Below are positions 15,029-60,790 of a stretch of DNA of 64,000 nucleotides, in pieces. Every line of letters begins with the position of its first letter. Positions within the stretch are counted from its first letter, which is position 1. The notes beneath the pieces are model-generated. The model was not told the DNA's origin. It saw only the letters and a program-made list of their open reading frames with translations, and searched no databases. Origin of the DNA: Cyanophora paradoxa CCMP329 (Eukaryota > Plantae > Glaucophyta); contig QPMI01000399.1 in assembly GCA_004431415.1 (NCBI GenBank), positions 150,306-214,305 of the forward strand, read 5' to 3'. Position numbers and translations under genes: made by a program.

Positions 15029-17056
15029 AAGAAGAAGAAGAGTATGTATAAGACACGCCCAAGCCGGTTGTGCGGTTTTGACGAGAGGCGAAGGACCCGA
15101 AGGCCCGAAGCACAATCGACAGTGAACCAACCAGACAAGGGTAGTGGCGGCGCAAACGCCTTACGGTCTGCCATGTATGCCCCGGCGGTCCGGCGCTCAT
15201 ACACGCAGACACGGAAAGCAACCACAGACATCCCAATGCGGGCCTCTTCCTAATGCCGGCCTGGGGGAGTCCTGGTCACGACCTCACGTGTGAAACCTTC
15301 AGCCATCAGTCATGTCATCAGCCTCTTCGTCAGAGATAAGCACCATTGGGGAACCTGGGTCCTCTGCGGTTCTGTCATACCCAGTCTTGCTGGCGTGGGC
15401 GTGTCTTTTACTTGCTCTCTTTTTTTTTTGGGTCATCAGCGAGATCCATAGGGGCAGCGGATGGGAAAGTTGGGGGAGGTGAAGGCCGCAAGCGTTTGAA
15501 AGAAACCTGAGGTGGGACACCAGGAATGTTATCACCATGATCCAGAGCACCAGGGTCTGGAGAAGACACTCGACGACGCTTAGACGGGACAATAGAAGGA
15601 GAAAGAGGATCAGTATCCATGGGCGTCATAGGCGCAGAAGACGGCAGAGGGGCAGAAGAGGGAGGAGCTGGGGAAGCAATGACAGCATGACTCGTGAAGT
15701 CGGGCTCAACATCAACAGCGTCGATTCGGATAGGAGAGATCGGCAGCAGATCAGGGGCAAGCTCAGTGTCATCCACATAGATGATAACTTGAGGAGAGGG
15801 CGGACGTGAACCTGTATCATCTATAGCAGCATCAAGACCAAACGCTGAAGCACCAACACGACGGCGTTGAAGAGGCGGCTCATCCTCCGAGTCAATATCA
15901 GGCGGCGGGTGAGGTGGCAGCGGGTGAGGGGGTGAGTGAGCTACAGGACCAGGGTCAGGGGCAGGGTCGGGTCCACCAGGGGGGTCGTCATCATCTGATG
16001 AGGTACTACTGGAGGAATCACCAGGATCATCAGGGCCAAGGTCGGAAAGGTCAGAGGAGTCTGAGCCGTTGTCAGGAGGGGACATATAGCCTTCAAGATC
16101 CTCCTTTTCAAGACGCTGCAGCAAGACAGGCCGCGCACTGGCATAAGGAAACTGAGCCACAAGGGGGCTAGGGGCTAGATCGGGGCTAGGGGCAGGCTGA
16201 GCAATATGTTCACAGTGCTCATAAGAGGCTAGGGAATGGTCATAAGTACGAGCAGCGTCTAAAAGATTAGCGTAGAATGAAGAATGAGAGGGGTCAGCAG
16301 TAGAGATGAAACGGAAATACCCACGGACATAGGTGACTTTAAATCGAGGTAAACGGCGAGGAAGCATGTCCATGAAATCGTCCAGTTCGCGGAACAAGGC
16401 AGTCATCAGTGTAGCGGTCTTCAAGCCCGTCTTGGAGGAAGGTGTAAGGGGCAGCTGTGTGTTAGGGTCCATTGCAAACGTAGCCGCAGCTTCAGTGCGA
16501 CCTGCTCGATAGGCCAGACAATACGAGCGGAAAATGACGTGCAATCCAAGAATCCGAACAACCTGCCACTCCCAGTTCTGCAAGAACATCCAGCTGTCAG
16601 CAAAACGGACCGAGCCAGTAAGCAACCAGGCAACAAAGCAAGCGGAAGGAATGGGCATCGGTTGGAGCTGCAGGGCATGGAAGATGAGCGACCAAAACTG
16701 CTGCACAAAACAGGGCAGAGAACGAAAACGTGCAGCGAAGAAGGAAGCAATTGCAAAAGAGGACCGGCCGCGCCACGGTGGTCCGGCCGGTTGCGAGCAA
16801 AGCCCCGTGCGGGGAACCTCATTGGGCCACGTCCCACAGGGCACGCAGCGCCAAATTAAAGGAGGGGCCGGCGCCGCGCGCCGAGAGGGCCCCAGGCCAG
16901 GGCCAGAAAAGGTAGACCACTCATTGCCTCGCGATCGTGGGCGTGGCTGGGGAGGATATCTCTTCACTCCCCTTGTACATGTGTCGGGGGGTACGCATTA
17001 GCTGCCCAGGTACTCATATTGCGCCCGCAGGGGGTACGTGATTTCGAGGGGGGTAC
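15029..17056 (-). mobile_element. Non-autonomous LINE derivative (C1): GTACCCCC-rich 5' leader, LINE ORF2 C-terminal remnant, 3' UTR with (CTT)n tail
   Basis: Homologous to C2 (49280-53050). Homology starts at LHVFVLCP, the end of zf-RVT. It ends GGGCGTGTCTTATACATACTCTTCTTCTTCTT. No RT or endonuclease sequence. No flanking TSD found. Confidence 0.75.
15362..15428 (+). mobile_element. 67-bp 5'-truncated 3' end of the single-ORF retroposon (B type)
   Basis: Matches the reverse complement of about 50108-50168. TSD TGGGTC (15356-15361 / 15429-15434). Removing it restores ..DDPGSPMVLISDEEADDMTDG*. Confidence 0.85.
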
Positions 17057-37300: not shown

Positions 37301-38851
37301 ATGTCCGGCAGCAGCGACGACAAAGAGACCGTCGTCGACAACGCAGCCGCCAATGACGACGAGCACAGCATCGTCGACATGGATGATGTCCGGCAGAGCA
37401 ACATACGGGACCTGATGAAGCTTATACGGGTCCGATGTTCAGATGCTTATACGAACCCTTGCCGCGTTCTAAACGCCCTTAGGCCTTTGGCGGCGGGAGT
37501 ACCGACGTTTCCAGGAAGACGCCGGGGCGCCGCAAGCGTACCGACACTGAAGAGGGGAGTGATTCGCGGGAGGAGGCCAAGCCGCGTCGTCGTAGCGCTC
37601 GTCTGGTCGGCAAGGTTCGCCCGTCGTGTTCCCGCCAAATTGCAGCTGTGGGGTCGATCGAGCGATCCCAGGTCTCGACCGCGGTTCCTGAGCAGCCCGA
37701 ACGACGCCGTCGGCGGGCAGGCAGCGCAAAGAAAATTACTGTACGGCGCCTGTTCGTCTTTCCGGCTGACAAGCTCAGGAGCTGTCGGGCACCCCCGAGC
37801 GCCGGTGACTGCAACCCGCTTGCTATCGCATCATATAATTGAGCCGAGCGCAGCGCTTCTCCTCAATCTGGAGGCGAAGAGGAGGCTCGGGCTCTACGAC
37901 AAGGAGACCGGCGTAACGTGCCTGCACCGCGTTTTGGCACCCTTGAAGCGCCCTCTGAAGACTCTCTAGATGTCATCAATGCAGGCAGAAAACGACTGAC
38001 CGGAAGAGCGAATGCGCAAATGAGCAGTGCTGCAAGACTGAGAAGGGCCACCTGTGTGGAAAATGCCTGTACGACCGGTATGGCGAGAACATTGAGGAGG
38101 TTTGGGCAGATCCTGAGTGGGTCTGCCCTGTTTGTGAGTCGCATTTGTTGCCGAGCGCTCTCTGAAAGTCTGGTCACTGTGTCTTCCGGATCACTCTGCA
38201 GGTCGGGGATTCTGCAACTGCTCGTTCTGTTGGGTGCGCGATGAACAACACGAGAGACACGAGGGCATGGCATTTACTGCGAGGCGCAGAAAGAGCTCAC
38301 TGGTGGGGAGGCGACAGGCGCCCTCGCCCCTCGAGCACGCATGCTGGGATACCTGTCCGTGGCACACTACCTCGCAGATTATTCACCGGGACTTCGGGTG
38401 CACATATGCTGAGTGCCGAGAGCTGCAGCTGTGCTGCTGTCGACCAGGAACGCAGCCACCAGGAATTGATCGGACGACACTCATGCAGCCTGGCCGTGAG
38501 CCGCCAGAGGCACGCCCCTGTGCCTGCACTTTTTCTGCCTGCCAATGCCTCTTGCAGCGCAAGGACGAGCACGACCTTTCTGAGGATGCAACTGTCGAGC
38601 AAGCCGTTGCACCTGTGGAGAGTGCACGAGAAGGCTCAGCAGCACCTGCGGTGGAAGCTGAGGAACAGCTCGAAGATGTCGAGGTGGTCGTTTCTGATGA
38701 TGGCTATACAGAGGACGAGGGCAATTCAGAGGAAGAGGGCGTTTTTGAGGTGAAGAAGGTGATACAGCCCGATAAGCCTTCCGAAATAGATCTGCCTTCG
38801 GATTTTTATCGAGGTTCTGATTCTGACAGTGAACCAGTCATTTTGATCTGA
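37301..38851 (+). CDS. Hypothetical spliced protein with acidic C-terminus
   Basis: Protein-like exons from MSGSSDDKETVV to DSDSEPVILI*. No recognised domain. Confidence 0.4.
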
Positions 38852-39215
38852 AACTTGGGATGCCCCCGCCTCATTCCAGTGTCCTCAGTGCCTGGCTTGA
38901 TTATCAGGCTTGGATTTTTCAGGCTTGATCCGTGACTCTAGCCTAGCAGCTGCAGTAACTATGTAATAACATAGCTGTGTGCTCGTGATGGCCTCTTCCT
39001 AATGCCGGCTGGGGGCACCTGGCCTGCCAGGCTGAGGTACTCCCGATCCCGTTTGCAGTTTTGAACCGCAGCTGCACTAGTACTGCGGCAATCATAGATA
39101 GCTTAAGGCCATCATGACCCCGGCCCGGCATTCCCCAGTGCGATCCGGAGTCGTGCTATTGCATGGCATTATATATAATTATAAATCGATGTCATGATGG
39201 GTGAAGGGCTCTACT

Positions 39216-39630
39216 AGAGAGAGAGATGAAGCAAAAAACACGCCCGTGGACTGGGGTGATGATCATGAGGTATGGCAACGCCGCAGAGGCCCCGAGTGGG
39301 ACATGCAAGGCTTGCCAGGGACCTACCCAGCACAGGTAGTGGTGTGCGTACGCACCGCATGGGACAGGGGCCGGGCCCCTGCACCGAAAGAGCAGAAGGA
39401 AAGAAACCATGCAGAGACCCACAGGGCCCCCACCATGGAATACCCCGAATCCCGGAACGACCCACTCCCTATCGAGCCGCCCGGGGTATTGAGGGTGGCA
39501 GCCCACAAAACAAAGGCAGAAGCAGGAGCAAGTACAATCAATTTACAAAACAGCCTCATCCATATCATCTTTAGAGCCATGGCTCCCTCCAGAAGAGCGG
39601 CCACGTGCACGCTTAGGAGGAGGAGAAGGA
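39216..39630 (-). mobile_element. Third, diverged single-ORF retroposon fragment (D): ORF C-terminus and 3' UTR
   Basis: Ends GGGCGTGTTTTTTGCTTCATCTCTCTCTCT and shares GGGGCCTCTGCGG with A and B. Encodes PPPKRARGRSSGGSHGSKDDMDEAVL*. Confidence 0.7.
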
Positions 39631-39894
39631 GAAGAAGAAGAAGAGTATGTATAAGACACGCCCAAGCCGGTTGTGCGGTTTTGACGAAAGGCGAAGGACC
39701 CGAAGGCCCGAAGCACAATCGACAGTGAACCAACCAGACAAGGGTAGTGGCGGCGCAAACGCCTTACGGTCTACCATGTATGCCCCGGCGGTCCGGCGCT
39801 CATACACGCAGACACGGAAAGCAACCACAGACATCCCAATGCGGGCCTCTTCCTAATGCCGGCCTGGGGGAGTCCTGGTCACGACCTCACGTGT
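39631..39894 (-). mobile_element. 5'-truncated LINE 3' UTR copy (C1 type) abutting the tail of C2
   Basis: Nearly identical to 15030-15293. Confidence 0.9.
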
Positions 39895-40191
39895 GAAGAA
39901 GAAGAAGAGTATGTATAAGACACGCCCAAGCCAGCTGTACGGTTTTGACGAAAGGCGAAGGACCCGAAGGCCCAAGGCACAATCGACAGTGAACCAGCCA
40001 GACAAGGGTAGTGGCGGCGCAGACTATACAGTTCACCATGTATGCCCCGGCGGTCCGGCGCTCATACACGCAAACCTGGAAAGCAATCGGCGAAATCCAA
40101 TGCGGGCCTCTTCCTAATGGCGTGGGCACGCCTGCTCCTGGGCATCCAGCCACTCGCCTTGGCGGATGCTCCGTCGGCCAGTATTTCCGTT

Positions 40192-43100
40192 ATGGACCCG
40201 TTTGCGGGGGTCTCTGCAGACTCTGCCTCATCGGCTTCCGGCCCACGTCGCGGTCCTGCTGCTCCTCGCTTTCAGCTTCCCTCTGATGCCCCCGTCACTG
40301 GCGGCTGGCCGGTTTACATCACTTCCCCTGTCCCTCGGAAATATGGCACTTTTGCAGTCTGTCCTTTGGGCCGTGAGGCTCTTGTCGCCGCTCTCTCTCA
40401 GTTTACCTCCAGTGCAGCCCTTGATGTCGAGCTCATGTACTCTTTCACCCCTGTGTGGGGCGAGACTGCTGATGTCCGCCGTATCAAGTCCTTTGATCGT
40501 GAAACTTTCTTCAAATCTCGCAAGGGCTCACTAGAGGCCCTCTGTCAGTTTCCTGCTTTTTCGGGCTCTTCTGTTACCGCTGAACAGTCGTTGTCCCAGT
40601 CTGAGCCATCTTGGATTCACCCCACGACTCAGGAAGCTTTTCCAACCAATCCTCGCCAATGTGATGTTTATCGCTTCCGCCTCCATCCAGCACTTCAGCT
40701 TGGTGCAATCAATGCTCTTCTCGCCCAGCGCCGCACCATGAATACTTTTTTTGGTTTTCTCCCTGAAACTCATGTAGTTTCTCGGAATGTCCGGCAAGCC
40801 CATAAAGACGCCACTATCCAAGCACTTGATAATTTACCAGCAGCTATTATATCCACTTCGTTTGCTCCTTCCTCCAAAGGATCTTGTCACTTCTTTTGGT
40901 ATGAATTTGGCTATCAGCCTCCTACCTCTGCCATGTCTGAGGCAGATAGCTCTTTGAACCATGTCGGCTTATATTCGCACGACGACTTTATCACTGAAAT
41001 TCTTAGCTTCCAGCATGCTCTTCAGGAGCCGGAATCTATCCTCCTGTCCACTTCTGCGGCGTCGGCTCCCCGCTGGCACATCGATAAGACTCGGACTATC
41101 TCTCTTTCTGATACTCCCATTGACTTCGAAGCCAGCCCTGATGTTTGCCTTGTAGCGTTCCACCAGCCTATCAAGACCTTCCAGCACGTTGTGTCTGCTT
41201 CTCCAGGCAGCCGCAGTTTTTCTGTCTTTTGTCGGCCTAACTTCGAATCCTGGGACTCTGTCTCCCCGAATCATCCTTTCAGCTGCCGCTTTAGTCTCCT
41301 TGTTCGTGTCCCTTCTACTCATCCCATTCATAAGGCAGCTATGAAGCAGTATTCTCCTCTTAAGAAGGATGACGGCTCTTCTGCTCGGCTAGTCTCTCTT
41401 GGTCTTGTGGGCACATCCGGTGGCATCAGTCGCTTCCATTTCAATAGCTTCAAACCGGAATTCTCTGCTCTCCAGTATTACATGTCTTTGGCTTCTACTC
41501 AGAAATGGTCTAGCCTCTCCGCTTTTTCCGCTCATTCTGAGGCAGATTGCCCTGTTCCGGCTGCCCAGGAATGCACAGACCTTAATCCTCCCTTTGATAC
41601 TCCTTACTACAGTCTTCGGGCAGCTGGTGATAAGTGTGTCTTGTACCACTTTCATCGAGATCCTGTTTTCTATTTCTTGAGCTCTACTACTCGTGAGGAG
41701 ATCATTCGTTTCCATTCCATTCAGCGTGCTTTTGCCACTGCTCAGCAGATTACTCGTGAGTCCGCAGCAGTGTTGCGAAGCGTAGTTTCCCTTCCCTTTC
41801 GCCATAGCGAATGTACCATGTACGCTAGTGATACCCCGTCCCTCGTGTAGGGGTATGTCATTCAATCATACGCGGATATTACGCGTGTGTGCACGTGCGT
41901 CCCGGCACGGCACTGCGCCGTGTGCGGAAGTGGCTTAGAACCCATCGTATAGCTTCTAACAGCTTCTTATCAGCGGGGCTGCCACCCCAGGCCGGCATTA
42001 GGAAGAGGCCCGCATTGGGATTTCGCCGATTGTTTTCCAGGTTTGCGTGTATGAGCGCCGGACCGCCGGGGCATACATGGTGAACTGTATAGGCGCCCGT
42101 CTGCGCCGCCACTACCCTTGTCTGGTTGGTTCACTGTCGATTGTGCTTCGGGCCTTCGGGTCCTTCGCCTTTCGTCAAAACCGCACAACCGGCTTGGGCG
42201 TGTCTTATACATACTCTTCTTCTTCTGCCGCCGGAAGCCATTGTATTTCGTGGCAGCGGTGGAATGTTCGACGCAAAGTGTTCGACACAGCGGTCTCACA
42301 GCGTCTGCGCATCGTTCTTCTGATTGCGTATACGCTAACGGTGCGTTCTGCAGCGATTTGCGCACTGCGACCTTTCATTGTTGATTCCGCCATTTTGCGG
42401 AGAACATAAGCTTGTTGCATCGCGATTCACTCATGGATCTCATTTTCGAAGCTGTGTGCGCTCTTGGCCGGCTGGCCGAGGTCGTTTGCTTGTGATACCT
42501 CCGTTTTCCGTGGAATCCCGCGAGTTTCCGGAGTTGTCTCTTTTCTCTCCTTTTGGAATCTCGCTTTATCTCTTCTTCTTTCTTTTGGAACGATCTGAAA
42601 TGTTTTCTTGAACACTGGCCTCGTCAAGCAACACTATTCGAGCAGTGTACCGTCGTAGGCTTGGGCCCTTCGTTAGGTCCTTAGTTAACGACTGTATTAA
42701 TAAAGCTATCCTGCTCTCCGCACAGGCAGGAAGGCTGGCTGACGAGGACAACGTTTCTGTGGACATTGACCAAGAGGACATCATGGCTGCCCAGCCTAGG
42801 GTGGACTTGATTAAGCCGCTCCTGCGCAACCTTCTTCTTCCCAAATTTGAGTATTCTGCTCCTTCTAGATTCCTTAAGAATGTTCGCGATGTGCTGAAGG
42901 CGATCTATGTCCTTCCCGCTGTGGACACCACTCCATACTCCACGTGGACGGCTCAGGCAAAGGTTGATTTTGACTATGCTTGGCCGCATGTGCAGTTAAA
43001 ACTCCAGTCTGTTTTCAATGAGGCAGCTGGGGCCCATGACTTTTCTCGAGTGGTCCTTGAATGTGACAATTGGACGACTTTTCTTAAGAAGTTCGAGGAT

Positions 43101-46100
43101 CACTTTATGCATTCGGATGTCCAGACGGATTCTGCTCGCAATTTCTGGTCCTACACATACCAGAGTGCTTGTCTCCAGGCTGGTACTCAAGTCAATTTTG
43201 AGGACTTTGCTGTGGAGAAGATGAAGCGAGCGGAGGAAGCTGGCATTCTCGAGAAAGTTGTGGTGAAACAAATTTGGAGTGATGATCTGAAGTTGGGTGA
43301 GCTGCCTGCTGAATTGGACGACAACAAACTTCGCTTTTTGCGTCGGCTGCGCAGTCTTTGGACCGACCGCACTTCATCTTTTTCTTCGGTTTCTCCTTTT
43401 GGAATCGGTTCTCTTCCTTTTGGATCGCCGAAAAATGTTTCTGGATTGAACGCTCTCACTTCGGAGCGTATTGAGTCTCTGATTGATGAGCGAGTCGAAT
43501 CGAAGCTTAAACAGTTCTCTTTGAAGGTGGATGATAAGCTCGATTCACTTCGTGACGAAACTCGTCGCCAATTGAGCGAGATTCGGCACGAAGCTCGCCA
43601 GCAGTTTGATGAGTTGCGCGATGACTCTCGTCGCACTTCTTCGATTATTTTGGATCGCATGGATCAGTTGTCTCGCCAGTTGCAGTATCGCCCTCGCGGT
43701 GATAGCTGGCGTGACCAGCCTCGTGGATCTTATAATTTTGATCGCAATCGTTCGAATGACAAATTTGTTAATTCTGGAAATGATTCTCGCAATTTTGGAA
43801 ATTCTTCTGGTGGTTATCGCGGTCGCTCGGCTGAGCGCCGTGGGTCGTCAGCTGACCCTAAGGGTCGGGGCGGTTCGCAGCCCCGCCCGGCGGGAAAAGC
43901 CTAACCCAGCCTGTTGTTGCCCGCCAGGCTGGGGCGGCCAAGAAACCAGCCATTTTCGGCGCAGCGAATGGACTGCGATCGTTGTTGCCTTTGATTACTC
44001 TCAACGAGTTCTTGAAGCGGCAGTCGTTGTCGGTCGCTCGCGCTTTCCCTTTCCCTTCCTTGGATGCTTCTCAATCTTCTTCTCCTATTTCTTCTTCTGG
44101 TCCCGATGTTACCCTTCAAGAGAATGATCCCATTATCCATGAGGTTGCTTCAGTGGAAATTCGCCCAGACATTCGTCCTGGCTATGGTCAAGCGCATTCG
44201 CGTGGAATTAATAATGCTTTGGATGATTCGAAAAGTGCTAGTAGAGTAGTGGTAGTTAGTGGAAATCGTGGAAAATTGGAACAGAAGTCCCTTTCGAATT
44301 TCTTTTCTGATGAGCTGCGATGGAAACGAGATGCCCCTGCTAAAAAGCATTTTATATCATCTGCAATCAATTCGAAGCCGGTTTCCCTGAAGTTGTCTTT
44401 TGATGATAATGGCCGAGCCTCAATTGAAATTTGTTCTCTGGACTCCCAGAGCCCTCCTGCTGAGCCTGCATTCGCAGGGCCGCGTCGCTTCATGACCTCA
44501 GCTCCGGGGAGGTCAACTCTGGACGTTTTCATTCAGGGCAAACATCACAAATTCCTTCTCGACAGCGGGGCAGATGTCTCTTTCATTCTTTCTTCTACTA
44601 TCTCTTCTCTTGGACTTCAAAATAAGGTGTTTAGAACTATTCACACTCCTTCTGTCAAGCTCCCGAATTCTGCATTGGTGGCTGTTCCTGGTGAGGTTCA
44701 TGTGGCTGCTACTATTGGGCCCCTCACCCGGAGTTTTCCTTTTCTTGTGGTTGATTTCCCGGGATACGCATTCGATGGCATTTTAGGCCAAGATTTCTTT
44801 TCTGATAATGCAGTCACCTATTGCAATAAGGACGCTGACAACCGATTTGTGGTCTTCGCCAAGCACCCAGACAAGCCAGTTAAGTGTGATATTCTCTCTT
44901 TCTTACCTGGCACCTCTACGCAGCCGAGTTCTCTGTCGCCGGAGACACCGGAATCTGACCCCTCGGACGACTCCAGCACTCGCAGAGTGTCCAAGGAACA
45001 TGGTCATATTCTGGAGGTTGCAAGGGAGGTTAAAATTGAACCTGGTGTGCAACGGAAGGTTGAACTGCAAGTCGGAGGCAACCGCTATTTGCCGGATTGT
45101 GAAGGTTTTCTTGTCAACTTCTACAAATGGGACGACAATCAGGAAATCCGTGTGGCAAACGGACTTGCTGCGTGTCGTGGAGGCAAAGTATATGCTTTAG
45201 TTTCGAATTTGAGCAATCGTTTTTCAGAACGACCAGTTGTTTTGAAGAAGGGCCGTGCAATCGCACGATTTGTCCCTGAGAAAAATCTCGAAGCTGAAGT
45301 ATTTGACTTGGCTCTCAATTTGAGTTATGATCAAGATGGGAACGGCAAGTATGTGAAGGTCGACCGGCCTGGCGAGGCCTCGACACCTTCGGTACCAACA
45401 TACTCTGCTCAGTACACTTGCGCCGACTCATTGCAAGTCAACTCTGCCGATGCCAAAATTGTTGGCAATTCTTCTGTGGAAATCGCGCCTCCAAAGTGTT
45501 TACCGGAGTCCGAGAATGCTTTTAAAAATGTTTCTGATAGAGTAGGTCTTCCCGAGTGTTCATATCCATATGAGGAGAAGTTAGGTAGTTTTTCGCATTT
45601 GAACGCTGTTCCGATCGATCAAGCTTCGACTATTATTTTTGATGAACTGCGGCAACGGTATGGCGCCGACATTATTGATGCTCTCCGAGCCGTCGATATC
45701 GGCAGTCGGGATGATACGCCTGCGGAGCGCGCTGTCATGGCTGACTTCCTTGCACAGAACTGGGACTTGGCCAAGGCTGCGCTTCCTCCGTACGACCCAA
45801 GTGCGCCTCATCCCCCGATCAAGCACTCGATCAAGACTGGGGATGCGCGCCCCATCGCGGAGCCCCCTCGGAGGCACTCGCAGACTGAACGAGAATTAAT
45901 TATCGATGAGACCAAAAAGTTGCTTTCTCGCAATCTTATTCGTCCCTCTCGCTCACCTTGGGCCGCTCCTGTGGTCCTTGTGCGCAAGAAGGATGGATCT
46001 CTTCGATTTTGCATTGATTATCGCAAATTGAATTCAGTTACTGCGGACGACGCTTATCCTTTGCCTAGAATTGATGATGCTCTCGAAGCTTTGACTGGAG

Positions 46101-48935
46101 CAATTTATATTACTGGTATGGATGCGCCTGATGGCTACTGGGGTGTTGAAATGGAGGAGGAGGACAAGGAGAAGACTGCTTTTCGGTCTCCCCTTGGACT
46201 TTTTGAGTGGAATGTTATGCCCCAAGGCCTGAAGACGGCCCCTGCCACTTTTCAAATGATGATGAACAGCGTTCTTGGCACTTATTTATATGTATTCATT
46301 TTGGTATATTTGGATGATATCTGTGTATTTTCGAAATCCTTGAAGCAGCACCTTGCTGATCTTCAATGGGTGTTTGATGCTATGAGACGGGCAAACATCT
46401 TCTTTAAGCCCAAGAAATCGAAATTCTTCAAGGCTGAATTGGAGTATCTTGGATTTGTAGTTACTAGACAGGGCATCAAGCCCTCTGCCACAAAGGTGGA
46501 GGCTGTTCGCAAGTTTGCGACCCCCAAATCTGTATCAGAAGTTAGGACTTTTCTTGGCATGACTGGATATTATAGAATCTTTGTACCTTTATATGCAGTT
46601 CTTGCGGCGCCACTCTATGATCTTTGCGCCAAGAGTTCACATTTTCATTGGACTGCTCGAGAGGATCTGGCTTTTCGGAAATTGAAAGAGTTGCTTTGTT
46701 CTGCTCCCATCCTTTCGCTCCCTAATTTCTCTAAGTCTTTCATTCTCAAAACTGATGCTTCTAAGACCGGAGTTGGTGCGGTCCTTTCTCAATTGGATGA
46801 ATTTGGGAATGAAAAAGTTGTTTCCTTTGCTTCTCACAAATTCTCATCTCCTGAGAAGAAGTGGAATCGGGAAGTTGTTATTGAATATGCAGCCGAGTCC
46901 CTTTCTGATGAGCAGCAGAAGTGGACAGTCACGGAGCAGGAGTTGTATGCAATTTGGTGGGCTGTCACCAAGAAGTTCCCTCAGTATCTCCGTGGCAAGA
47001 AGTTCATTATCAAGTCTGATCACTCGGCTCTTCAATATTTGAAATCGGCTAAGAAGTTGCCCAGTGCTCGCATCACTCGCTGGATTATGGATATGCAGGA
47101 GTTTGATTTCGAGATCCAGCATAAGCCGGGCAAGTCTAATGCTGATGCGGATGCTCTTTCTCGCCTGGTGCGAGTAGCAGTTCTTTCCTTGGAAGCGATG
47201 GAGTTTTCTTCTAATTTTTCGAGCGCTTTCTTGGATGCAATTGAGTTGCAGTTGAGTTTGCCCCCGGCTCGAATTCGGGATGAGCAAATAAATGATGTTA
47301 TTTTGGCGGATATGATTAAGTATTTAGAATCAGATATTACTATTGAACCGCAAGGTGTCAACAAGGAGGCCGAACGCCAACTCAAGAGCGGCAAGTTTTC
47401 TGTGCAAGATGGCGTTCTCGTCCACACTCGGCCTTCGGACAAACTTGTGCGTATTTGCGTACCAGATCATCTTAAATCAACTATTCTGTCATCGGTGCAC
47501 CGCACGCTCGGACATCCTGGAGTCGGCAAAATGTACAATCATCTCAAGCGGCGGTACTATTGGCGGAGTATGTTTTCTGATGTCGCTACATTTGTTTCGA
47601 CATGCGCCGATTGCCAGCGTGTCAAGAATTCCAAGACTGTACAAGCGGTTCCTCAATTTGAGATTCATGCTGACCGGCCGATGCAGCACTTGGAAATTGA
47701 CATCGTCGGGCCTTTTCCGAAGTCGAAGCAAGGCAACAAATATCTGATTACTATTATCGATGTTTTTACGCGTTGGTGCCATGCGGTGCCCGCGCGAACG
47801 AAGTCGGCTATGTCCGTCATTCGGGCATTGTTCGACCACTGGATACCCCTTTATGGAGTCCCCGCCAAGATTTCGTCGGATCAGGGCGGCGAATTCAAGA
47901 ATTTGCTTCTTAATGAACTGGAGCGTCTTTTTGGAATAAAGGCGGTCTTTTCTTCATCTTATCATCCGCAGTCACAAGGAGCTGTGGAAAAATTGAATGA
48001 CACTTTGGTCACTCGCCTACGGTTTTATATTGACAAAAATGCTTCAACATGGGATCTCTCTCTTCCATTTGCGCTCTTCGCAGTGCGCAATTTCATTAAT
48101 CCTACAACGGGCTACACTCCTTTCGAAATGTTGTACGGGAGGCCTTGTACTCTTCCTGCGGACTTGCTGGCTACTCCTGAAGTTCAAGTGACAACTTCTG
48201 AGCCTACTGGTTACCCAGCCGTGTTGGCTCGGCGGTTCTCTCGCATTTATACCGATATTCAGCAAGCTAAGGAGGAATATCTTGCCAAGCAGCAGCAGCG
48301 GCCTTCTCAACCAGTTTTCATTCCTGGAGAAGTTGTTGCTGTGAAGACCCCTTCCACTCGGCGGTCTGACAAGCTCTCCCACCGTTTCACTGGACCTTGG
48401 ACGGTGCTTAAAGATGTTTCTCATGGCAAGGGAGTTACTTTCTTGCTGGAGTATTCTGGTCCTAAGGAGCGTGGTTCTCCTGCTGAGGGCTCGCGTCAAA
48501 TGGTTCATGCCTCTCGGCTCAAGCCTTGGAGGGACCCTGATTGATCTCTTTCTTTTCTTTTCCTTCCTTGGCCTTGGCCAGCGCGGACGTGGCCTTTTTC
48601 TTACTTGGAGGAGAGTTGTTGCGAAGCGTAGTTTCCCTTCCCTTTCGCCATAGCGAATGTACCATGTACGCTAGTGATACCCCGTCCCTCGTGTAGGGGT
48701 ATGTCATTCAATCATACGCGGATATTACGCGTGTGTGCACGTGCGTCCCGGCACGGCACTGCGCCGTGTGCGGAAGTGGCTTAGAACCCATCGTATAGCT
48801 TCTAACAGCTTCTTATCAGCAGCACAGGCTCAGGCCCAGTCTTCTGATGCTCCTGCTAGCAAGCGTACTCGTCTTTCTGATCCTGAGTCTAACAACTCTT
48901 CTGTTGGTATGGCAGATGCTGCTTTTAATGAGTAA
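40192..48935 (+). CDS. Unknown 563-aa protein of retroposon A, interrupted by Gypsy (join 40192-41770, 48823-48935)
   Basis: Removing the Gypsy and one GCAG restores the frame ..RESAAAQAQAQSSDAPASKRTRLSDPE..AAFNE*. Homologous to the B protein. Confidence 0.8.
41771..41972 (+). repeat. 5' LTR
   Basis: TGTTGCG...CTTATCA, identical by eye to 48617-48818. Confidence 0.97.
41984..42224 (+). mobile_element. 241-bp LINE 3' UTR copy inserted in the Gypsy primer-binding region
   Basis: TSD CTGCC (41979-41983 / 42225-42229) and (CTT)n tail. Confidence 0.9.
42645..43904 (+). CDS. gag: Gag-like protein
   Basis: Position in the element, WTTFLKKFEDHF capsid-like motif, coiled coil and R/G/N-rich tail. 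No CCHC knuckle seen. Confidence 0.8.
   Translation: MYRRRLGPFVRSLVNDCINKAILLSAQAGRLADEDNVSVDIDQEDIMAAQPRVDLIKPLLRNLLLPKFEYSAPSRFLKNVRDVLKAIYVLPAVDTTPYSTWTAQAKVDFDYAWPHVQLKLQSVFNEAAGAHDFSRVVLECDNWTTFLKKFEDHFMHSDVQTDSARNFWSYTYQSACLQAGTQVNFEDFAVEKMKRAEEAGILEKVVVKQIWSDDLKLGELPAELDDNKLRFLRRLRSLWTDRTSSFSSVSPFGIGSLPFGSPKNVSGLNALTSERIESLIDERVESKLKQFSLKVDDKLDSLRDETRRQLSEIRHEARQQFDELRDDSRRTSSIILDRMDQLSRQLQYRPRGDSWRDQPRGSYNFDRNRSNDKFVNSGNDSRNFGNSSGGYRGRSAERRGSSADPKGRGGSQPRPAGKA
43892..43941 (+). promoter_or_regulatory. -1 programmed ribosomal frameshift signal
   Basis: G_GGA_AAA heptamer in gag frame, 6-nt spacer, perfect 9-bp stem CCCAGCCTG/CAGGCTGGG. The -1 frame is open into pol. Confidence 0.85.
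43892..48544 (+). CDS. pol: Pol polyprotein (protease, dUTPase-like spacer, RT, RNase H, integrase)
   Basis: LLDSGA, RFCIDYRKLN, MPQGL, YLDD, TDAS, HHCC, DDE core (IDIVGP..SDQG..VEKLN), terminal GPW..HASRLK. No chromodomain. Confidence 0.97.
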   Translation, partial: GKSLTQPVVARQAGAAKKPAIFGAANGLRSLLPLITLNEFLKRQSLSVARAFPFPSLDASQSSSPISSSGPDVTLQENDPIIHEVASVEIRPDIRPGYGQAHSRGINNALDDSKSASRVVVVSGNRGKLEQKSLSNFFSDELRWKRDAPAKKHFISSAINSKPVSLKLSFDDNGRASIEICSLDSQSPPAEPAFAGPRRFMTSAPGRSTLDVFIQGKHHKFLLDSGADVSFILSSTISSLGLQNKVFRTIHTPSVKLPNSALVAVPGEVHVAATIGPLTRSFPFLVVDFPGYAFDGILGQDFFSDNAVTYCNKDADNRFVVFAKHPDKPVKCDILSFLPGTSTQPSSLSPETPESDPSDDSSTRRVSKEHGHILEVAREVKIEPGVQRKVELQVGGNRYLPDCEGFLVNFYKWDDNQEIRVANGLAACRGGKVYALVSNLSNRFSERPVVLKKGRAIARFVPEKNLEAEVFDLALNLSYDQDGNGKYVKVDRPGEASTPSVPTYSAQYTCADSLQVNSADAKIVGNSSVEIAPPKCLPESENAFKNVSDRVGLPECSYPYEEKLGSFSHLNAVPIDQASTIIFDELRQRYGADIIDALRAVDIGSRDDTPAERAVMADFLAQNWDLAKAALPPYDPSAPHPPIKHSIKTGDARPIAEPPRRHSQTERELIIDETKKLLSRNLIRPSRSPWAAPVVLVRKKDGSLRFCIDYRKLNSVTADDAYPLPRIDDALEALTGAIYITGMDAPDGYWGVEMEEEDKEKTAFRSPLGLFEWNVMPQGLKTAPATFQMMMNSVLGTYLYVFILVYLDDICVFSKSLKQHLADLQWVFDAMRRANIFFKPKKSKFFKAELEYLGFVVTRQGIKPSATKVEAVRKFATPKSVSEVRTFLGMTGYYRIFVPLYAVLAAPLYDLCAKSSHFHWTAREDLAFRKLKELLCSAPILSLPNFSKSFILKTDASKTGVGAVLSQLDEFGNEKVVSFASHKFSSPEKKWNREVVIEYAAESLSDEQQKWTVTEQELYAIWWAVTKKFPQYLRGKKFIIKSDHSALQYLKSAKKLPSARITRWIMDMQEFDFEIQHKPGKSNADADALSRLVRVAVLSLEAMEFSSNFSSAFLDAIELQLSLPPARIRDEQINDVILADMIKYLESDITIEPQGVNKEAERQLKSGKFSVQDGVLVHTRPSDKLVRICVPDHLKSTILSSVHRTLGHPGVGKMYNHLKRRYYWRSMFSDVATFVSTCADCQRVKNSKTVQAVPQFEIHADRPMQHLEIDIVGPFPKSKQGNKYLITIIDVFTRWCHAVPARTKSAMSVIRALFDHWIPLYGVPAKISSDQGGEFKNLLLNELERLFGIKAVFSSSYHPQSQGAVEKLNDTLVTRLRFYIDKNASTWDLSLPFALFAVRNFINPTTGYTPFEMLYGRPCTLPADLLATPEVQVTTSEPTGYPAVLARRFSRIYTDIQQAKEEYLAKQQQRPSQPVFIPGEVVAVKTPSTRRSDKLSHRFTGPWTVLKDVSHGKGVTFLLEYSGPKERGSPAEGSRQMVHASRLKPWRDPD
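48617..48818 (+). repeat. 3' LTR
   Basis: Identical to the 5' LTR. Confidence 0.97.
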
Positions 48936-50417
48936 TCCTGAGTACTACATGACCGTATATTTTTCTTTGTCCCTGCGGGGCCTCCTGATACCCTGGGGCC
49001 GCCCGACAGGGAGCGGGCCGTCACGGGGATTCAGGCCCTTCCTATGTGGCGCCGTCGGGTGTCCATATAGGGTGCCCTATTTCCTTGCTGGCGCCCTGGG
49101 GGTGGTGGCCCAGGGTCCTGTATGCGGCTCCACTCACTCCCCATGCTAGTGGGTCCCTGACGGGCCTTGCACGTCCCATTCGGGGCCTCTGCGGCTTTGT
49201 CATACCCAGTCTTGCTGGCATGGATGTGTCTACTGCATTTCTCTCTCTCTCTCTGCCTCTTCCTAATGCCGGCCTGGGGTATTCCCGATCCCGTTCACAT
49301 TTGTAAGCCCGAATTGTAGTGTTAGAGAGAGAAAGATTAAAGAACCATGTCATCAGCATCATCAACACAGTCAATGAGCACCACAGGAGAACCAGAATCA
49401 TCACTGAAGACCGGAAGGTCAGCAGGAGAAGAAAGATGCGAACGTTTAACAGAAGGAAGAAAAGATGGGTCACTGGATCCGTCCGTGAAACCATCAGAGA
49501 AGCAAGGAAGAGCAGGGGAAGAGGGTCGACGGCGCTTCAGGGTGAAACCAGGGGGCAAATCAGGGTCAGTGTCCATAGGAACAGAGGAAGAAGGAAGAGA
49601 TGATGAATGGCTCCCAACATCGAGAGCATCGTCAGTGATGTCAGCAGCAACTACAGGAGAAGACAGAGGTAATTCAGCGTCGAGTTCGGGATCAAAGAGG
49701 TCAATAATCACTTGAGGAGAGAGTGGAGGCAAACTGGTATCATCAACCGTATCATCGACAACGTTAGACGCTTGCACAGGAGGTCCCAAATCATCGACAC
49801 GACGACGGCGAAGAGGTGGCTCGTCTTCAGTGTCAAAATCCGGCGGGGGGTGAGGGGGAGTGTGCAGGGGTGATGGAGGCGGAGGAAGCATAGGGTCAAG
49901 AGCAGGAGCAGGGTCTGGTGCCTGAGGAGGGTCGTCGTCGTCCGAAGAGATGCTTGTGGAAGAGTCATCAGGAGCATCAGGGCCCAGGTCTGAAAGGTCA
50001 GAGGAGTCCGAACCATCATCAGGAGGGGACATATACCCTGCAAGATCTTCCTTTTCAAGGCGTTGCAGCAGGACAGGCCGCACACTGGCATAGGCAAACT
50101 GAGAGAGAGAGAGAGCAAGTAAAAGACACGCCCACGCCAGCAAGACTGGGTATGACAGAACCGCAGAGGCCCCTAATGGAGCTTGCAAGGCTCTGTCAGG
50201 GACCCACTAGCGTGGGTAGTGATGAGAGATGCTCTTGAGAACCTGCGAAAGACAAGCTGCACAAAGTCCCTACCCGGGCCGTAGGGTCCCCATGCAAAGA
50301 AAAAGCCCTAACTTCCTGAACTGACCTGCTCCCTAACAGGCCAGACAGGGTGTTAGGGAAGACGGGAGAGAGGGAAACCGAAGACGATCATTCAAGATTA
50401 GAAGTACAGAAAAAAAA

Positions 50418-52231
50418 TTACACAATTGTGTCATTAGAACCAGAAGGAGTAGAGGGATCAGAGGGGCGAGAACGCTTAGCACTAGGGCTACGGCCAGTGC
50501 CATCGAGATGCTGACCTTCCTCAAATGAATCAGAAAACGATTTCTCAAGGGCCAGAAGAAGAAGAGTATGTATAAGACACGCCCGAGCCGGTTGTGCGGT
50601 TTTGACGAAAGGCGAAGGACCCGAAGGCCCGAAGCAAGGGCCAGCTGCTTGCGAGCCTCATCATAAAAAGCATCGAGGCGGGGGCGCACAGAGGCAGGCA
50701 AAAAGTAAAACATGGGATCCTGATGGAAGTGGTACAAGAAGGTGTGCTCATCAACATCAAGAATGCTGTAATTTTTGTCAGGCTCCTGGCAAGGGATCTG
50801 GTAGCAAGGAGAGGTGGAGGCAAAAGAGTAAGAAGAAGGATCGAGAGCCTTGCCATTGTGAGCAAGAGAGGAATAATACTCAAGAGAAGAGTACTCAGGA
50901 AGAAGAGTCTGCACATAAAATTTGTGAATGTAGTTATCCGAGCCAAGAATCATGAGGGAACGCATGGCGAGGGGCCGAGCGGGCCGAGGCTTGATGAAAC
51001 TAGTACGACGCTCGAGGCTCTGGAAGAGCATAGAAGCCAAGGGCACTTTCAAAATGAGACTAAGATGAGCACGATCGGTATGAGCAGCAGGGAAATCACC
51101 AAGCTCAGGGCGACAAAGAAGATCATAGCGGGAGCCAGAGCCAGTGAAAGTGGTCTTAGCGACCATATCAAGTACAGGCTGAGTAAAGGCAGCTGCCAGA
51201 AAAACTGGAGAAGGAATGGACTTATCCAAGCCAGCGAGTTTGAAGGGATTGAAGGGGATGGTGTTCTCAGAATTCAGCTCTACACGCTCAACAGGAAGCG
51301 AAGACATAAAGACACAATCTGGCTTGGAAAGGTTAAGTGCCATCGTTTTGAGTTCAGCCAGGAAGGCTTGGGCGCCAAGGCGAATGAGGAAGCGGGGTGG
51401 CTTAGCACCAGAGGGGCCAGCACCATTGGAGGACTCAGGGGCAGTACGGAGAACAGATTGATAATAAGAAAGCTCGATCGGGAAAAATTGGTCTACCACA
51501 TCAGAGACACCAACAGTCTTAAGGCCATAAAAGACATCATATGCTTGAAGGAAATGGGGCTTGGTCTGCAAAGGAGTGAGGGTCGAAAGCATGGTACGAG
51601 CTGGGTGAGAAATTGGAGTACAGTTGAAAATCGAAGACAAGGTACGATGATGAGCTAAATAGGCGCCAAAGCCACCAACAACTGAGCGATAGTAAAACTG
51701 ATAAGTGAAAGCATTGAAGGTAGCACCACTATAGGAATCCTGAGAAGTGGACTGCTTAACAAAGCCGTGCTTCGCGGAGGAGGACCATGGGTGCTGAGAG
51801 AACATGGAATTGATGGGAGCAAGGCGGTTCTGGAAGGCCGAGAGGCGGACAGATTCAGGGAGGTCACGGCCAAAGTCTGCAGGTTCATTCACGATGACAC
51901 CTTCCTGGATACAGAAGCGCATGGCGACGGAGACATCATCGAAGGGCTTGCAAGAGCGAAGCGCATCGGCAAGGACAGTCTGAACATGCATGTACTTGGG
52001 CAGGCCGCCAATCTTGCGGGTGACGGGCCGCGTCATGAACGCGGCAAACTCGCGGACGCGAGGAAGGTGGTGGTAGTCAGGGACGCGGGAATTGCCCGAA
52101 AGCGATGGTGACTGAGCGTCAACAGCGAAGAAGTCGGCAACCTCCACAGAACCCTCAAGTGCACGGGGAGCCGGCGGCGGTCCCTGCTGCTGGCGGCGCT
52201 GCCCCGGAGCACGGGGCGGATTGGCGGACAT
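50418..52231 (-). CDS. Unknown 574-aa protein of retroposon B (frame broken near the C-terminus by an 89-bp insertion)
   Basis: Runs MSANPPRAPG.. to ..KQLALEKSFS..SAKRSRPSDP..NDTIV* once the insertion is removed. Homologous to the A protein. Confidence 0.8.
50556..50634 (-). mobile_element. 79-bp LINE tail insertion
   Basis: 10-bp TSD CAAGGGCCAG (50546-50555 / 50635-50644). Confidence 0.92.
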
Positions 52232-53111
52232 TCTAAAAGCTGCGTACAGTGGAGCAAAGGTCAGGATTGTCCGAGATGGAAAGATTTGAACGTTGGCTGG
52301 GCGAGCCACAAATCGGCGTCTAAGCGCGCAGCTGGCGGCCAGGATCTGCGTAAAGAGCGCACCCGTGCACACGGGGCGAGAGGTATGTGGGCCAGAGGCC
52401 AGAAATGGGGCCGACGGCCAACGGGGGGGGTACGGCAAACTGAGCAACAAGGGGGCTAGGGGCCAGATCGGGGCTAGGAGCAGGCTGAGCGATATGTTCG
52501 CAATGCTCATAAGAGGCTAGGGAATGGTCATAAGCACGAGCAGCGTCCAAGAGATTAGCGCAAAATGAGGAGTGAGATGGATCAACCGTAGAAATGAAAC
52601 GGAAATCCCCACGGACATAAGTGACTTTGAATCGAGGTAAACGACGAGGAAGCATGTCCATGAAATCATCGAGCTCGCGAAACAAGGCAGACATCAGAGT
52701 GGCCGTCTTCAAACCGGTTTTGGAGGAAGGCGTAAGGGGCAGCTGTATGTCAGGGTCCATCGCAAACGTAGCAGCAGCTTCAGAGCGACCTGTATGATAG
52801 GCTAGAGAATACGAGCAAAATGACGTGCAGACCAAGAATCCGAACAACCTGCCACTCCCAGTTCTGGAGAAACATCCAAGTATCAGAGAAACGGACCGAG
52901 CCAGTGAGCAGCCAGGCAACAAAGCGTGCAGAAGGGATGGGCATCGGCTGGAGCTGCAGGGCATGGAAGAGAAGCGACCAGAACTGCTGCACTACGGGGC
53001 AAAGAGCAAAGACGTGCAGCGCGTTGCAGTGCCGGTGGCAGACCGGACATAGCGAAGAGAGAAGCTCACTGTCAAGCAAATTCGCCGAAGCGGGACGCTG
53101 AAGATCACGTG

Positions 53112-53493
53112 AAAAAAAAGAGAGAGAAATGCAGTAGACACATCCATGCCAGCAAGACTGGGTATGACAAAGCCGCAGAGGCCCCGAATGGGACGTGCAA
53201 GGCCCGTCAGGGACCCACTAGCATGGGGAGTGAGTGGAGCCGCATACAGGACCCTGGGCCACCACCCCCAGGGCGCCAGCAAGGAAATAGAACACCCTAT
53301 GTGGACATCCGACGGCGCCACATAGGAAGGGCCTGAATCCCCGTGACGGCCCGCTCCCTGTCGGGCGGCCCGAGGGTATCAGGAGGCCCCGCAGGGACAA
53401 AGAAAAATATACGGTCATGTAGTACTCAGGATTACTCATTAAAAGCAGCATCTGCCATACCAACAGAAGAGTTGTTAGACTCAGGATCAGAAA
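53112..53493 (-). mobile_element. 5'-truncated copy of retroposon A
   Basis: Near-identical reverse complement of about 48874-49248, with a CT/T tail. Confidence 0.9.
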
Positions 53494-53742
53494 CGTTTCA
53501 AACTGAACGGAGTTTGCGTCACGCCCCGCCCATTGTTAACTTCTTCCGCCAATGAAATTAGCCCAGCGCAAACTTGAGCTCGAACTTGGCCTCGTACACA
53601 GTGGCGTACACACGCGGCCACAACGGTCACAGTAACGGTCAGCAGGCCGGCTTGCTAGTCAGCTTCCCTCGGCTAGGCCGGACTAGCTAGCTTCCCGCCA
53701 TCGCGCACGCCCGAGCGCGAGCATTCCTGCACGCCGCCGTGC

Positions 53743-55772
53743 ATGAAGCAGTCAAAGCGAAAGGAACCCAGCCTCTGGGATGACGGCTTCGACGAGGCCC
53801 GACGTCGGCACCGCTGGCACGGCAAGCGACCCGACAGCAGCAGCTCGTGGGCCGGCAAGGGCAACATGAAGCGTGTCAACAAGATCACTCAGCAGGCGCG
53901 CAAGGCGAAGGAGCCCAAGCTCCCTGACCTCGACATCCTCAAGGGCGAGCACCCCGCGGCAACGGTCCGCTGCCTGGACACCAGCGGCCGCGCCTACCAC
54001 GTTCGCCTTGGCGACTTCGTCATCTGTTCAGTTAGCTCAGACACCCAGCTGTGTCCAGAACTCAGCGTCGTTCGCCCGAAGCCCTTCCATTTCCCGCGCC
54101 CAGGTGAAACGATTTTGGCGCGAGTCGAGGGCGAGTTCCCAACACAGACGAAGGCGAAGCGCGGCGACTTCAACTACTCCGTCAACGGCGTCATCCTTCG
54201 GCGCTTCGTGCGCCCGGAGGACTCCGATGTGAAGGACTGCGGGCTCGGCAGCGTGATCATCAAGGCAGACGGGGAGCAGGCAGCCGTGGCCATCGCAAAC
54301 CACCTCATCTACTACTCGAACGTGACGGTCCGCCCGCCGCGCCCGCGCCCCGTTCCAGCGTCCGATGCCCGTGCGCGCAGGTTCACGCACCCGCGAAGGT
54401 GGTGGCCGCGGACGAGTACAAAGCCCTCAACCACGCCGATCCCCACATCTACGTCTGTAAGCAAATCATGACGTTCCCGGGCGACGGCTCCTTCCAGTTC
54501 GACGTCGCCCTCGCCTTCAACGCGAGGCTCAAGCGAGTGGCGAAGAAGAAGATGGCGTGCTTCCTCCGGCCGCTGTCGAGGCCGGAGGAGCGCGTGGAGG
54601 CGATTGGCTACCTTCAGGACGCCGCCGCGAACGCCCTCAAGCGCCGGAAGACCGGGACGCAGCTTGTCAACGTCAAGATCCCGGTGGCCGGGCCGGCAAT
54701 GTTGGTCTGCGGCTCTTATGACTCGTTCGAAGTTCTTTTTCCTATCCTCTAACGGTGCGCATCGCAGGAGAACATCGTGGCGCAGGTCGCGCACGTCGCC
54801 ACGCCCATCGACCCGAAGACGGGCCAGCCGATCCCGGTTGACAAGCTGCCGGCGGCGAATCGCTTCGTTATCGAGCTTCCGGACCGCGAGACCGCTGCTG
54901 GTGGAAGCCGCTTCCTTTTTCCCGCTCGCTGTTCTTTTTCCGACCTCTTTGCAGCTGTTCTCGGTCCCTCCGGCGTGGCGCAAGCGTCCAAGCGCGTCTG
55001 CAAGCGGGACGCGGACGGGAAGGCGATCCGGAAGCACAGCGAGATGCAGACCGTCACCGTCGAGAAGGCGTACGGCGGCTTAATCGTGCCGCGCCACACG
55101 GGCTCCCATGACGTCGTCCAGTTCGACGAGCGTGCGCCCGGCCCGCCCTCGCCGCGCCGCTCGCTTACGAAGCTCTGCTCCTTGGGCGCGGCAGGTCCCG
55201 GTCGGATCGTGGCCACGAAGCGCTCGGGCAGGAAAGGTGGGCACGTCACGCTCGAGCTTCCGAGCTACGAGTACGGCCCCGACGGCGAGCGCATCGCCAG
55301 CCTCGCGGGGCCCCTCGCGGCTGTCCCCGTGAAGCGCCCGCGCCGGTGCCGCGCCGGCGCCAACACCGTCGCCAAGGCGCCGCCTGTCCCGAAGCAGCCC
55401 CTTCAGAACCTGCCGCCGCCGCCCTGCCGGCCCCCGCCGCCGCCGCCCTGCCGGCCCCCGCCGTCGCCGCCCCGCCGGCCCCCGCCGCCGCCGCCCTGCC
55501 GGCCGCCGCCGCCGCCGCCCCGCCCGCCCCCGCCCCGCCGGTCGCCGCCCTGTCGGCCCCTGCTGCTGCTGCCCCACCGGCCGCTGCCGCCCTACCTGCC
55601 CCCGCCGCATCCGCCTCGGTCCCCAAGTGCGCCCCCTCCCCCTCGCCCCCGCTCGGCTACTTGCTCGCCTAATCCTGCAGCAGGAAGGATCGCGCGGCAC
55701 AGCTCGCGGCCGCGGTGGCGGCGCGCAAGAGGGCAAAGTCGTGAAGCTGCTACTGAGAATCGCACTATCTAG
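53743..55772 (+). CDS. BAH-domain protein, spliced, convergent with the RAG1-like gene
   Basis: YHVRLGDFV..ILARVE..LRRFVRPED..(intron 54328-54380)..AKVVAADEY..IYVC follows the BAH consensus order. C-terminal frame is uncertain. Confidence 0.65.
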
Positions 55773-55811
55773 GTTACAAGGTGCGCTATGTCTGGTCCAA
55801 ATCCATTTCGT

Positions 55812-58800: not shown

Positions 58801-58892
58801 GGCACATCTTCCTTGCCGCGAGCGCGTTTCGGGCGGTGCCGGGGCCGGGGCCGGCCGCGGCGCCGGGCTCGGCGCCTCATTAAGAACTGCAT
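55812..58892 (-). CDS. RAG1/Transib-like DDE transposase, intron-containing, with apparent single-base frameshifts
   Basis: GDG (D at 57588), PLMLFGGSDSEENLRPRIKPL, TGDYKFLR (D at 57277), CPHCD, DALH, LQRHLRDK, ISANTAKKIL, TRYMHSTLAHL, GRWSCEVIES (E at 56385), LLRRLR, DMLK. All are colinear with the RAG1 core. Confidence 0.85.
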
Positions 58893-60496: not shown

Positions 60497-60790
60497 GCCG
60501 TTAGCCGCCCCCGCCCCGCCGTTAGCCGCCCCCGCCCCGCCGGCCCCCGCCCCGCCCCGCCGGCCCCCGCCCCCGCCCGCCGGCCCCCGCCCCCGCCCCG
60601 CCCCGCCCCGCCCCCGCCCCGCCCCGCCCCCGCCCCGCCCCCGCCCCGCCCCGCCCGCCCCGCCCCGCCCCGCCCCCGCCCCGCCGCCCCGCCCCCGCCC
60701 CGCCCGCCCCCGCCCCGCCCCGCCCCGCCCCGCCGGCCCCCGCCCCCGCCCCGCCGGCCCCCGCCCCCGCCCCGCCGGTCGCCGCCCTGC
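60497..60790. repeat. (CCCCG)n-type GC microsatellite
   Basis: Directly visible. Confidence 0.9.

Follow-up and report, generated by a model that had tools for sequence, protein, structure and literature searches.

A candidate LINE-dependent retroposon family encoding a protein of its own in the glaucophyte Cyanophora paradoxa

Results

Two single-ORF elements lie within an island of nested mobile elements

We analysed a 64,000-nt stretch of the genome of the glaucophyte alga Cyanophora paradoxa CCMP329 (contig QPMI01000399.1 of assembly GCA_004431415.1, positions 150,306 to 214,305 of the forward strand; hereafter the window, in whose coordinates all positions are given). The focus is on two elements, A and B, each of which carries one long open reading frame (ORF) for a protein of about 570 residues and which probably belong to one family of non-autonomous retroposons. 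The host stretches of the window have a GC content of 67-82%, compared to 45-59% from about 38,000 to 54,000. This interval is an island of nested mobile elements, which we resolved by reading the sequence and by comparing the window with itself. Mobile elements of glaucophytes are almost undescribed in the literature searched.

Element A lies on the plus strand and is split in two. Its 5' part (40120..41770) comprises a 72-nt 5' untranslated region (UTR) and codons 1-526, starting with the ATG at 40192, and its 3' part (48823..49254) holds the last 37 codons, the stop codon (48933-48935), a 319-nt 3' UTR and a (CT)8 tail. The two parts are separated at 41770/41771 by a Ty3/Gypsy long terminal repeat (LTR) retrotransposon (41771..48818, plus strand), which is flanked by a GCAG target-site duplication (TSD). 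Removal of this insertion together with one GCAG copy restores an element of 2,083 bp with an ORF of 563 codons, the product of which ends in ..SKRTRLSDPESNNSSVGMADAAFNE. A itself is flanked by a 14-bp TSD (left copy 40106-40119, right copy 49255-49268), whose bases belong to a short repeat, here called X; a copy of X was hence the insertion target of A. The Ty3/Gypsy element is complete and very young. Its 202-bp LTRs are 100% identical, and its gag-like ORF (42645-43904) and its pol ORF encoding protease, reverse transcriptase (RT), RNaseH and integrase (43982-48544) are both intact. A copy of X (41985-42226) sits directly behind its 5' LTR; contigs assembled from public sequencing runs contain the same Ty3/Gypsy family without this X copy, with a loose end at 48820.

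Element B occupies 50104..52433 on the minus strand. Its ORF runs from 52231 to 50645 and from 50555 to 50418, and its (CT)7 tail marks the end with the lower coordinates. The gap in the ORF is an insert of 89 bp (50556..50644, minus strand), consisting of an 80-nt, 5'-truncated copy of X with a (CTT)n tail and one copy of a 9-bp TSD, and it shifts the reading frame of B. Without the insert, B measures 2,241 bp, with a 202-nt 5' UTR, a 314-nt 3' UTR and an ORF of 574 codons that ends in ..AKRSRPSDPSTPSGSNDTIV; an 11-bp TSD (GGCAAACTGAG) flanks the element at 50093-50103 and 52434-52444. All four public runs examined contain B without these 89 bases, so intact ORFs of the B type are present in other parts of the genome or among its transcripts. 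The initial annotation of this region had described both elements as 2.1-2.2 kb units ending in (CT)n, with TSDs of 14 bp (A) and 11 bp (B) and ORFs of 563 and 574 codons once nested inserts are removed, and our reconstruction agrees in every one of these points.

B is inserted in another repeat, E, which lies on the minus strand (53112-52434, continued at 50103-49320) and has a second copy at about 15440-16967. This second copy is uninterrupted at exactly the insertion point of B (about position 16149). In addition, run X18 contains a contig of 237 nt in which 52434 follows directly on 50092, with 11 letters shared at the joint and 3 other differences (98.7% identical). A near-identical E thus exists without B, which constitutes an empty site.

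Shorter copies reveal a third subfamily

Truncated 3' copies had been placed near 15362 and 53112, and both were recovered. The copy at 53113..53493 (minus strand) contains the last 21 codons, the 3' UTR and a CT/T tail and is 99% identical to A, while the one at 15357..15432 (plus strand) is a stub of the B subfamily that retains half of the 3' hairpin described below, the terminal box and a CT/T tail. A further 5'-truncated copy at 39216..39612 (minus strand; upper end approximate) belongs to neither subfamily. It holds the last ~25 codons, a 3' UTR similar to those of A and B, the hairpin and a (CT)5 tail. Its C-terminus reads PKRARGRSS..AVL before the stop (PKRARGRSSGGSHGSKDDMDEAVL), in line with the earlier remark that one fragment ends in PKRAR.

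The upper end of the A-type copy, 53493, coincides with the boundary of another repeat that starts at 53494. Another multi-copy element, perhaps of the RAG1-like transposon family at 53743-58892, probably ends at this position, and the A-type copy may accordingly have been cut by that element instead of being 5'-truncated. The contigs of all four runs break exactly at 53493/53494, with at least two different continuations, neither of which is found in the window; sequencing depth to the right of 53494 jumps to 126-237.

The family members end in a common structured 3' module

The last ~120 bases are common to five elements (A, B, the copy at 53113-53493, the fragment at 39216 and the stub at 15357-15432) at about 85% identity, although the proteins of A and B are only about 25% identical. 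RNAalifold predicts a hairpin of about 83 nt, which in A spans 49141..49223 (plus strand) with 31 pairs, followed by an unpaired box of the GTGTCTT type (GTGTCT..T[GA]C) and the (CT)n tail. Across the alignment, 93% of the hairpin cells are paired; shifting the partners by 1-3 columns lowers this value to 35-47%. Compensatory changes occur in 4 hairpin pairs, and the covariation score lies above all but 4 of 500 shuffles, a result that is supportive, not conclusive, for five sequences of which two are near-identical. The tails, (CT)5-8, vary in length and in places switch from CT to T runs, as expected if they are made during reverse transcription.

Repeat X is a SINE-like element (SINE, short interspersed nuclear element) of 266 bp that ends in (CTT)n and has short TSDs; some of its copies are 5'-truncated. 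Five copies or fragments are present in the window, at 15029-15294, 39632-39897, 39896-40119 continued at 49255-49310, 41985-42226 and 50556-50635; a longer variant of its 5' part is seen at 38991-39067 and 49255-49310. Scanning the entire window for Rfam families and tRNAs returned nothing, and X shows no recognisable small-RNA head. With B it has the terminal box alone in common, that is, the last ~16 bases (TGGGCGTGTCTTATAC in X vs TGGGCGTGTCTTTTAC in B). As copies of X reside inside the Ty3/Gypsy element with identical LTRs as well as inside B, the enzyme recognising that end must have been active very recently.

The window contains no RT apart from that of the Ty3/Gypsy element. Repeat E includes a weak remnant resembling zf-RVT (CxxC..H..C; E value 0.18, below the Pfam cut-off), followed by a long ORF for an acidic, proline-rich product, of which 519 aa are open in the second copy, and then by a TCTTTCTCTCTCT tail. 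By these sequence features, E probably represents the 3' portion of a long interspersed nuclear element (LINE).

The proteins of A and B are homologous and under purifying selection

The proteins of A and B match each other in BLASTP with an E value of 2e-21 (24% identity across 380 residues); aligned globally, they are 26% identical. The global alignment contains all sequence blocks from which the two had been called divergent yet homologous, including LYHFH.DP.FYFL and PE[FY]S.L.YY.SLA, and we reach the same conclusion. We then compared the nucleotide sequences in a protein-guided alignment of 514 codons. Identity at codon positions 1, 2 and 3 is 0.405, 0.514 and 0.362, respectively, compared to 0.257, 0.269 and 0.319 by composition alone. 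Neither ORF contains a stop, whereas composition-matched shuffles contain 17-18 (minimum 5). With silent positions essentially saturated, the second position half conserved and no stops in either frame, these findings argue for long purifying selection, as had been proposed. A formal ratio of non-synonymous to synonymous substitution rates between A and B is not computable because the silent sites are saturated, and the B ORF has only two read-derived variants, a synonymous one and a Gly>Ser change, too small a number for such a purpose.

The C-termini of all three subfamilies carry a common KRxR motif, which by its sequence may be a nuclear-localisation signal. Ser, Ala, Pro and Phe are abundant in both proteins, whose isoelectric points are near-neutral (6.7 and 8.5). 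Neither a CCHC nor a CxxC motif was found in A or B by regular-expression searches and Pfam. The ORFs of A, B and the Ty3/Gypsy element all have T/C-rich coding strands; in A and B, third codon positions are 74-75% pyrimidine and only 6-10% A. This signature leaves one alternative and one antisense frame of the retroelement ORFs almost without stops.

The protein has no recognisable relatives in sequence databases

Pfam yielded no family for either protein at E values up to 10, and the same search together with a motif search gave no indication of an RT, an endonuclease, an RNA-recognition motif (RRM) or a zinc knuckle, none of which the initial annotation had seen either. The units have room for one ORF only, which takes up 1.7 kb of their 2.1-2.2 kb. 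No relatives were found in NCBIfam and PHROGs, in a word-index search of 5.8 billion proteins with A, in a full HMMER search of 1.84 billion representatives with a profile of A and B, in IMG/VR or in the JGI metagenomes. The same profile had no match among the sequences of the Protein Data Bank (PDB) at E values up to 10, and look-ups of the exact product of three ORF versions also returned no match. AlphaFold2, supplied with the two-row alignment, reached a mean predicted local distance difference test score of only 32.0 for A and 31.8 for B; these unreliable models contain no long helix.

Earlier suggestions for the protein were an 'ORF1-type' protein, an anti-silencing factor or a selfish effector. 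The first of these found no support: neither L1 ORF1 nor any other Pfam family is matched, no zinc knuckle is present, the isoelectric points are not those of a basic protein, and a long helix is missing from the (unreliable) models.

The B-family gene is probably transcribed and may contain a 5' UTR intron

Most of the sampled words of B were found in 20 public runs. We compared four of these runs, from four studies, with positions 48600-53600. Their whole assemblies amount to 6.6-33 Mb, and the interval was covered in 26 of 30 bins by run X1 and in 23 of 30 bins by run X15; such small assemblies with uncovered bins fit transcriptomes better than genomic DNA. Each of the four runs contains a contig of 1.7-1.85 kb on B, reaching from about 50635/50681 to 52392/52420 with 0-2 differences (99.9-100% identity). 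Depth on B is 75-116 vs 0-40 on the flanks formed by E. The B-family gene is thus probably transcribed.

In run X18, one contig joins 52239 to 52363 and so skips 123 nt of the 5' UTR (52240..52362, minus strand). On the strand of B, the skipped stretch starts with GT, ends with AG and lies shortly before the ATG. It is most economically read as a spliceosomal 5' UTR intron that is spliced in part of the RNA and retained in the DNA copy, in which case the retroposed template would be unspliced RNA. The elements had been described as intronless, which for B is probably incorrect.

A LINE-dependent retroposon family is the favoured explanation

These findings suggest that A and B, the two full-length members examined, are likely to represent deeply diverged subfamilies of one non-autonomous retroposon family of the non-LTR type, with the fragment at 39216 as a third subfamily. 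We consider it probable that this family depends on a LINE for its mobility while encoding a protein of its own. The region had earlier been interpreted as a LINE-parasitic gene cassette. Of this proposal, the part that concerns mobility is supported, as the units are devoid of an RT, bear the marks of target-primed reverse transcription (TPRT) and end in a common structured 3' module; the ORF1-type nature of the protein is not supported.

Several known systems resemble this layout. In LINE/SINE pairs of the stringent type, such as eel UnaL2/UnaSINE1 and others of the CR1/L2 clades, both partners possess a common 3' stem-loop and a microsatellite tail. A, B and the fragments likewise have in common a 3' hairpin and a short-repeat tail, of which X has the terminal box only. 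However, the passengers here are mRNA-like units of 2.1-2.2 kb with a selected ORF and not SINEs of the RNA polymerase III type. The telomeric element HeT-A of Drosophila, likewise of the non-LTR type, codes for a protein but not for an RT and relies on the enzyme of another element; its product is a Gag with a zinc knuckle, and it targets chromosome ends. A and B, in contrast, lack a CCHC motif and are inserted in dispersed repeats with TSDs. HAL1 elements are ORF1-only derivatives of L1 whose ORF remained intact for tens of millions of years (Bao & Jurka 2010, as summarised in PMC3627910). Like HAL1, A and B are non-autonomous non-LTR units with one long-maintained ORF and no RT, presumably served by a LINE ORF2 protein in trans and by their own protein in cis. 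Unlike HAL1, which is derived from L1 and encodes a recognisable L1 ORF1p, they encode a protein that matches no ORF1 family, including L1 ORF1p as represented by Pfam Transposase_22, and their 3' end is a hairpin with (CT)n and not poly(A). The architecture therefore resembles that of HAL1 or HeT-A, and the layout is rare but known; the protein is unrelated to theirs.

A possible mobilisation cycle can be outlined as follows. Each unit would be transcribed from its own 5' end as an mRNA-like RNA, as suggested by contigs that start near the 5' end, one of which is spliced. The unspliced RNA would serve as the template for copying, given that the intron is kept in the DNA. A LINE RT acting in trans would recognise the ~83-nt hairpin, the GTGTCTT-type box and the (CT)n tail, a role to which the structure-conserving module common to the copies points. 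Integration proceeds by TPRT, for which the TSDs of 9-14 bp, the shortened 3' copies, the empty site and the microsatellite tails all speak; this is the route that had been put forward for these RT-less units, and the evidence upholds it. The protein with its KRxR end has been kept by selection. Most likely, it would act on the RNA of the element itself, helping to package it, to deliver it to the nucleus or to recruit the borrowed enzyme, by analogy to HAL1 ORF1p and HeT-A Gag.

A number of observations weigh against this explanation. An ORF1-like role of the protein would be analogy only, as the protein is not basic and is devoid of a nucleic-acid-binding motif. That the runs are RNA is a guess, and their contigs give neither strand nor transcript ends. 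A contig of run X1 continues for 106 nt past 52420, beyond the 5' end of B, into sequence that is absent from the window, and this copy of B may lack about 100 nt of its full leader or belong to something longer. No RT-bearing LINE with the hairpin module is present in the window. The tail of repeat E is CT-rich as in A and B and has neither hairpin nor box; beyond this tail, E and the two elements have nothing convincing in common.

The last points bear on the possibility that the units are the 3'-terminal gene and tail of a longer LINE, released by 5' truncation or by a subgenomic transcript from the gene's own promoter. The probable intron kept in B and the contig that extends 106 nt beyond its 5' end would be in agreement with such an origin. 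However, A and B begin 72 and 202 nt upstream of their ATG and not at random depths. Moreover, B-family contigs from the four runs end within ~40 nt of the 5' end or 106 nt beyond it, not kilobases further on, and no RT-coding sequence lies next to any of the five copies in the window. Derivation from a longer LINE is unlikely.

With still lower probability, the protein may be a new structural protein of a retroelement, either a captured capsid of the double-stranded RNA (dsRNA) virus type or the 'ORF1 half' split off from a LINE system of two parts, with the helper gene and the RT gene carried by separate elements. A specific and very improbable version holds that the ORF is the capsid gene of a partitivirus- or picobirnavirus-like dsRNA virus, which was reverse-transcribed into the genome, gained a LINE 3' module and spread as a retroposon. 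A language-model feature search did place B beside capsid clusters of partitiviruses and picobirnaviruses (0.95, 190 of 256 features), a weak lead, and a single-ORF unit of 2.1-2.3 kb suits a partitivirus capsid segment. Yet the recognition value for B is far under the trustworthy range, and the homologous protein A gave no usable match in the same search. The capsid profiles PF25666, PF20816 and PF20895 were not matched in Pfam at E values up to 10, nor was any relative found in IMG/VR or among the 1.84 billion representatives. The S/A/P/F-rich composition that results from a T/C-rich coding strand may alone mimic such proteins. Endogenous partitivirus capsid genes of plants and animals usually occur in low copy number and lack a LINE 3' module; the likeness would consist of a single capsid-sized ORF integrated via LINE reverse transcription, next to the weak lead for B.

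Finally, an origin of A and B by retrocopying from members of a host gene family or from a domesticated gene, with LINE-derived 3' sequence lying alongside by chance, would account for intact, selected and probably expressed ORFs without a domain typical of transposable elements, but it is highly improbable, as the same 3' hairpin and tail occur on three diverged subfamilies, complete insertions with TSDs sit within other repeats and some copies are shortened, (CT)n stands in place of a poly(A) tail, and the ~50% GC and T/C-rich third positions resemble the neighbouring Ty3/Gypsy element and differ from the 67-82% GC of the host. The retrocopy of an intron-bearing host gene had been named at the outset as an explanation that would overturn the proposal; a processed copy with poly(A) was not seen, and the tail and the retained 5' UTR intron are at odds with one.

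If A and B indeed belong to a LINE-dependent family with a protein of its own, they add to the rare RT-less retroposons that keep a protein, for which HAL1 and HeT-A are the standard examples and which show that an element may borrow its enzyme and yet require a helper protein in cis. The protein has been conserved through saturation of silent sites and hence serves the element or the host in a way for which no known ORF1 type accounts. The window offers two diverged subfamilies side by side and a third as a fragment. The structured 3' module and the young SINE-like repeat X with the same terminal box form a tractable pair for the study of 3'-end recognition by algal LINEs. Should the 5' UTR intron be confirmed, B would be an added case of retroposition from unspliced RNA. 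Should the protein turn out to be a capsid or a detached 'ORF1 half', the system would amount to an obligate bipartite retrotransposon in an early-branching alga.

Proline-run repeats outside the island

A 24-bp tandem repeat at 55412-55650, which codes for proline runs of the PPPPCRPPPPPP type, lies within a long ORF at 54777-55772. Repeats similar to it are also present at 60504-60794.

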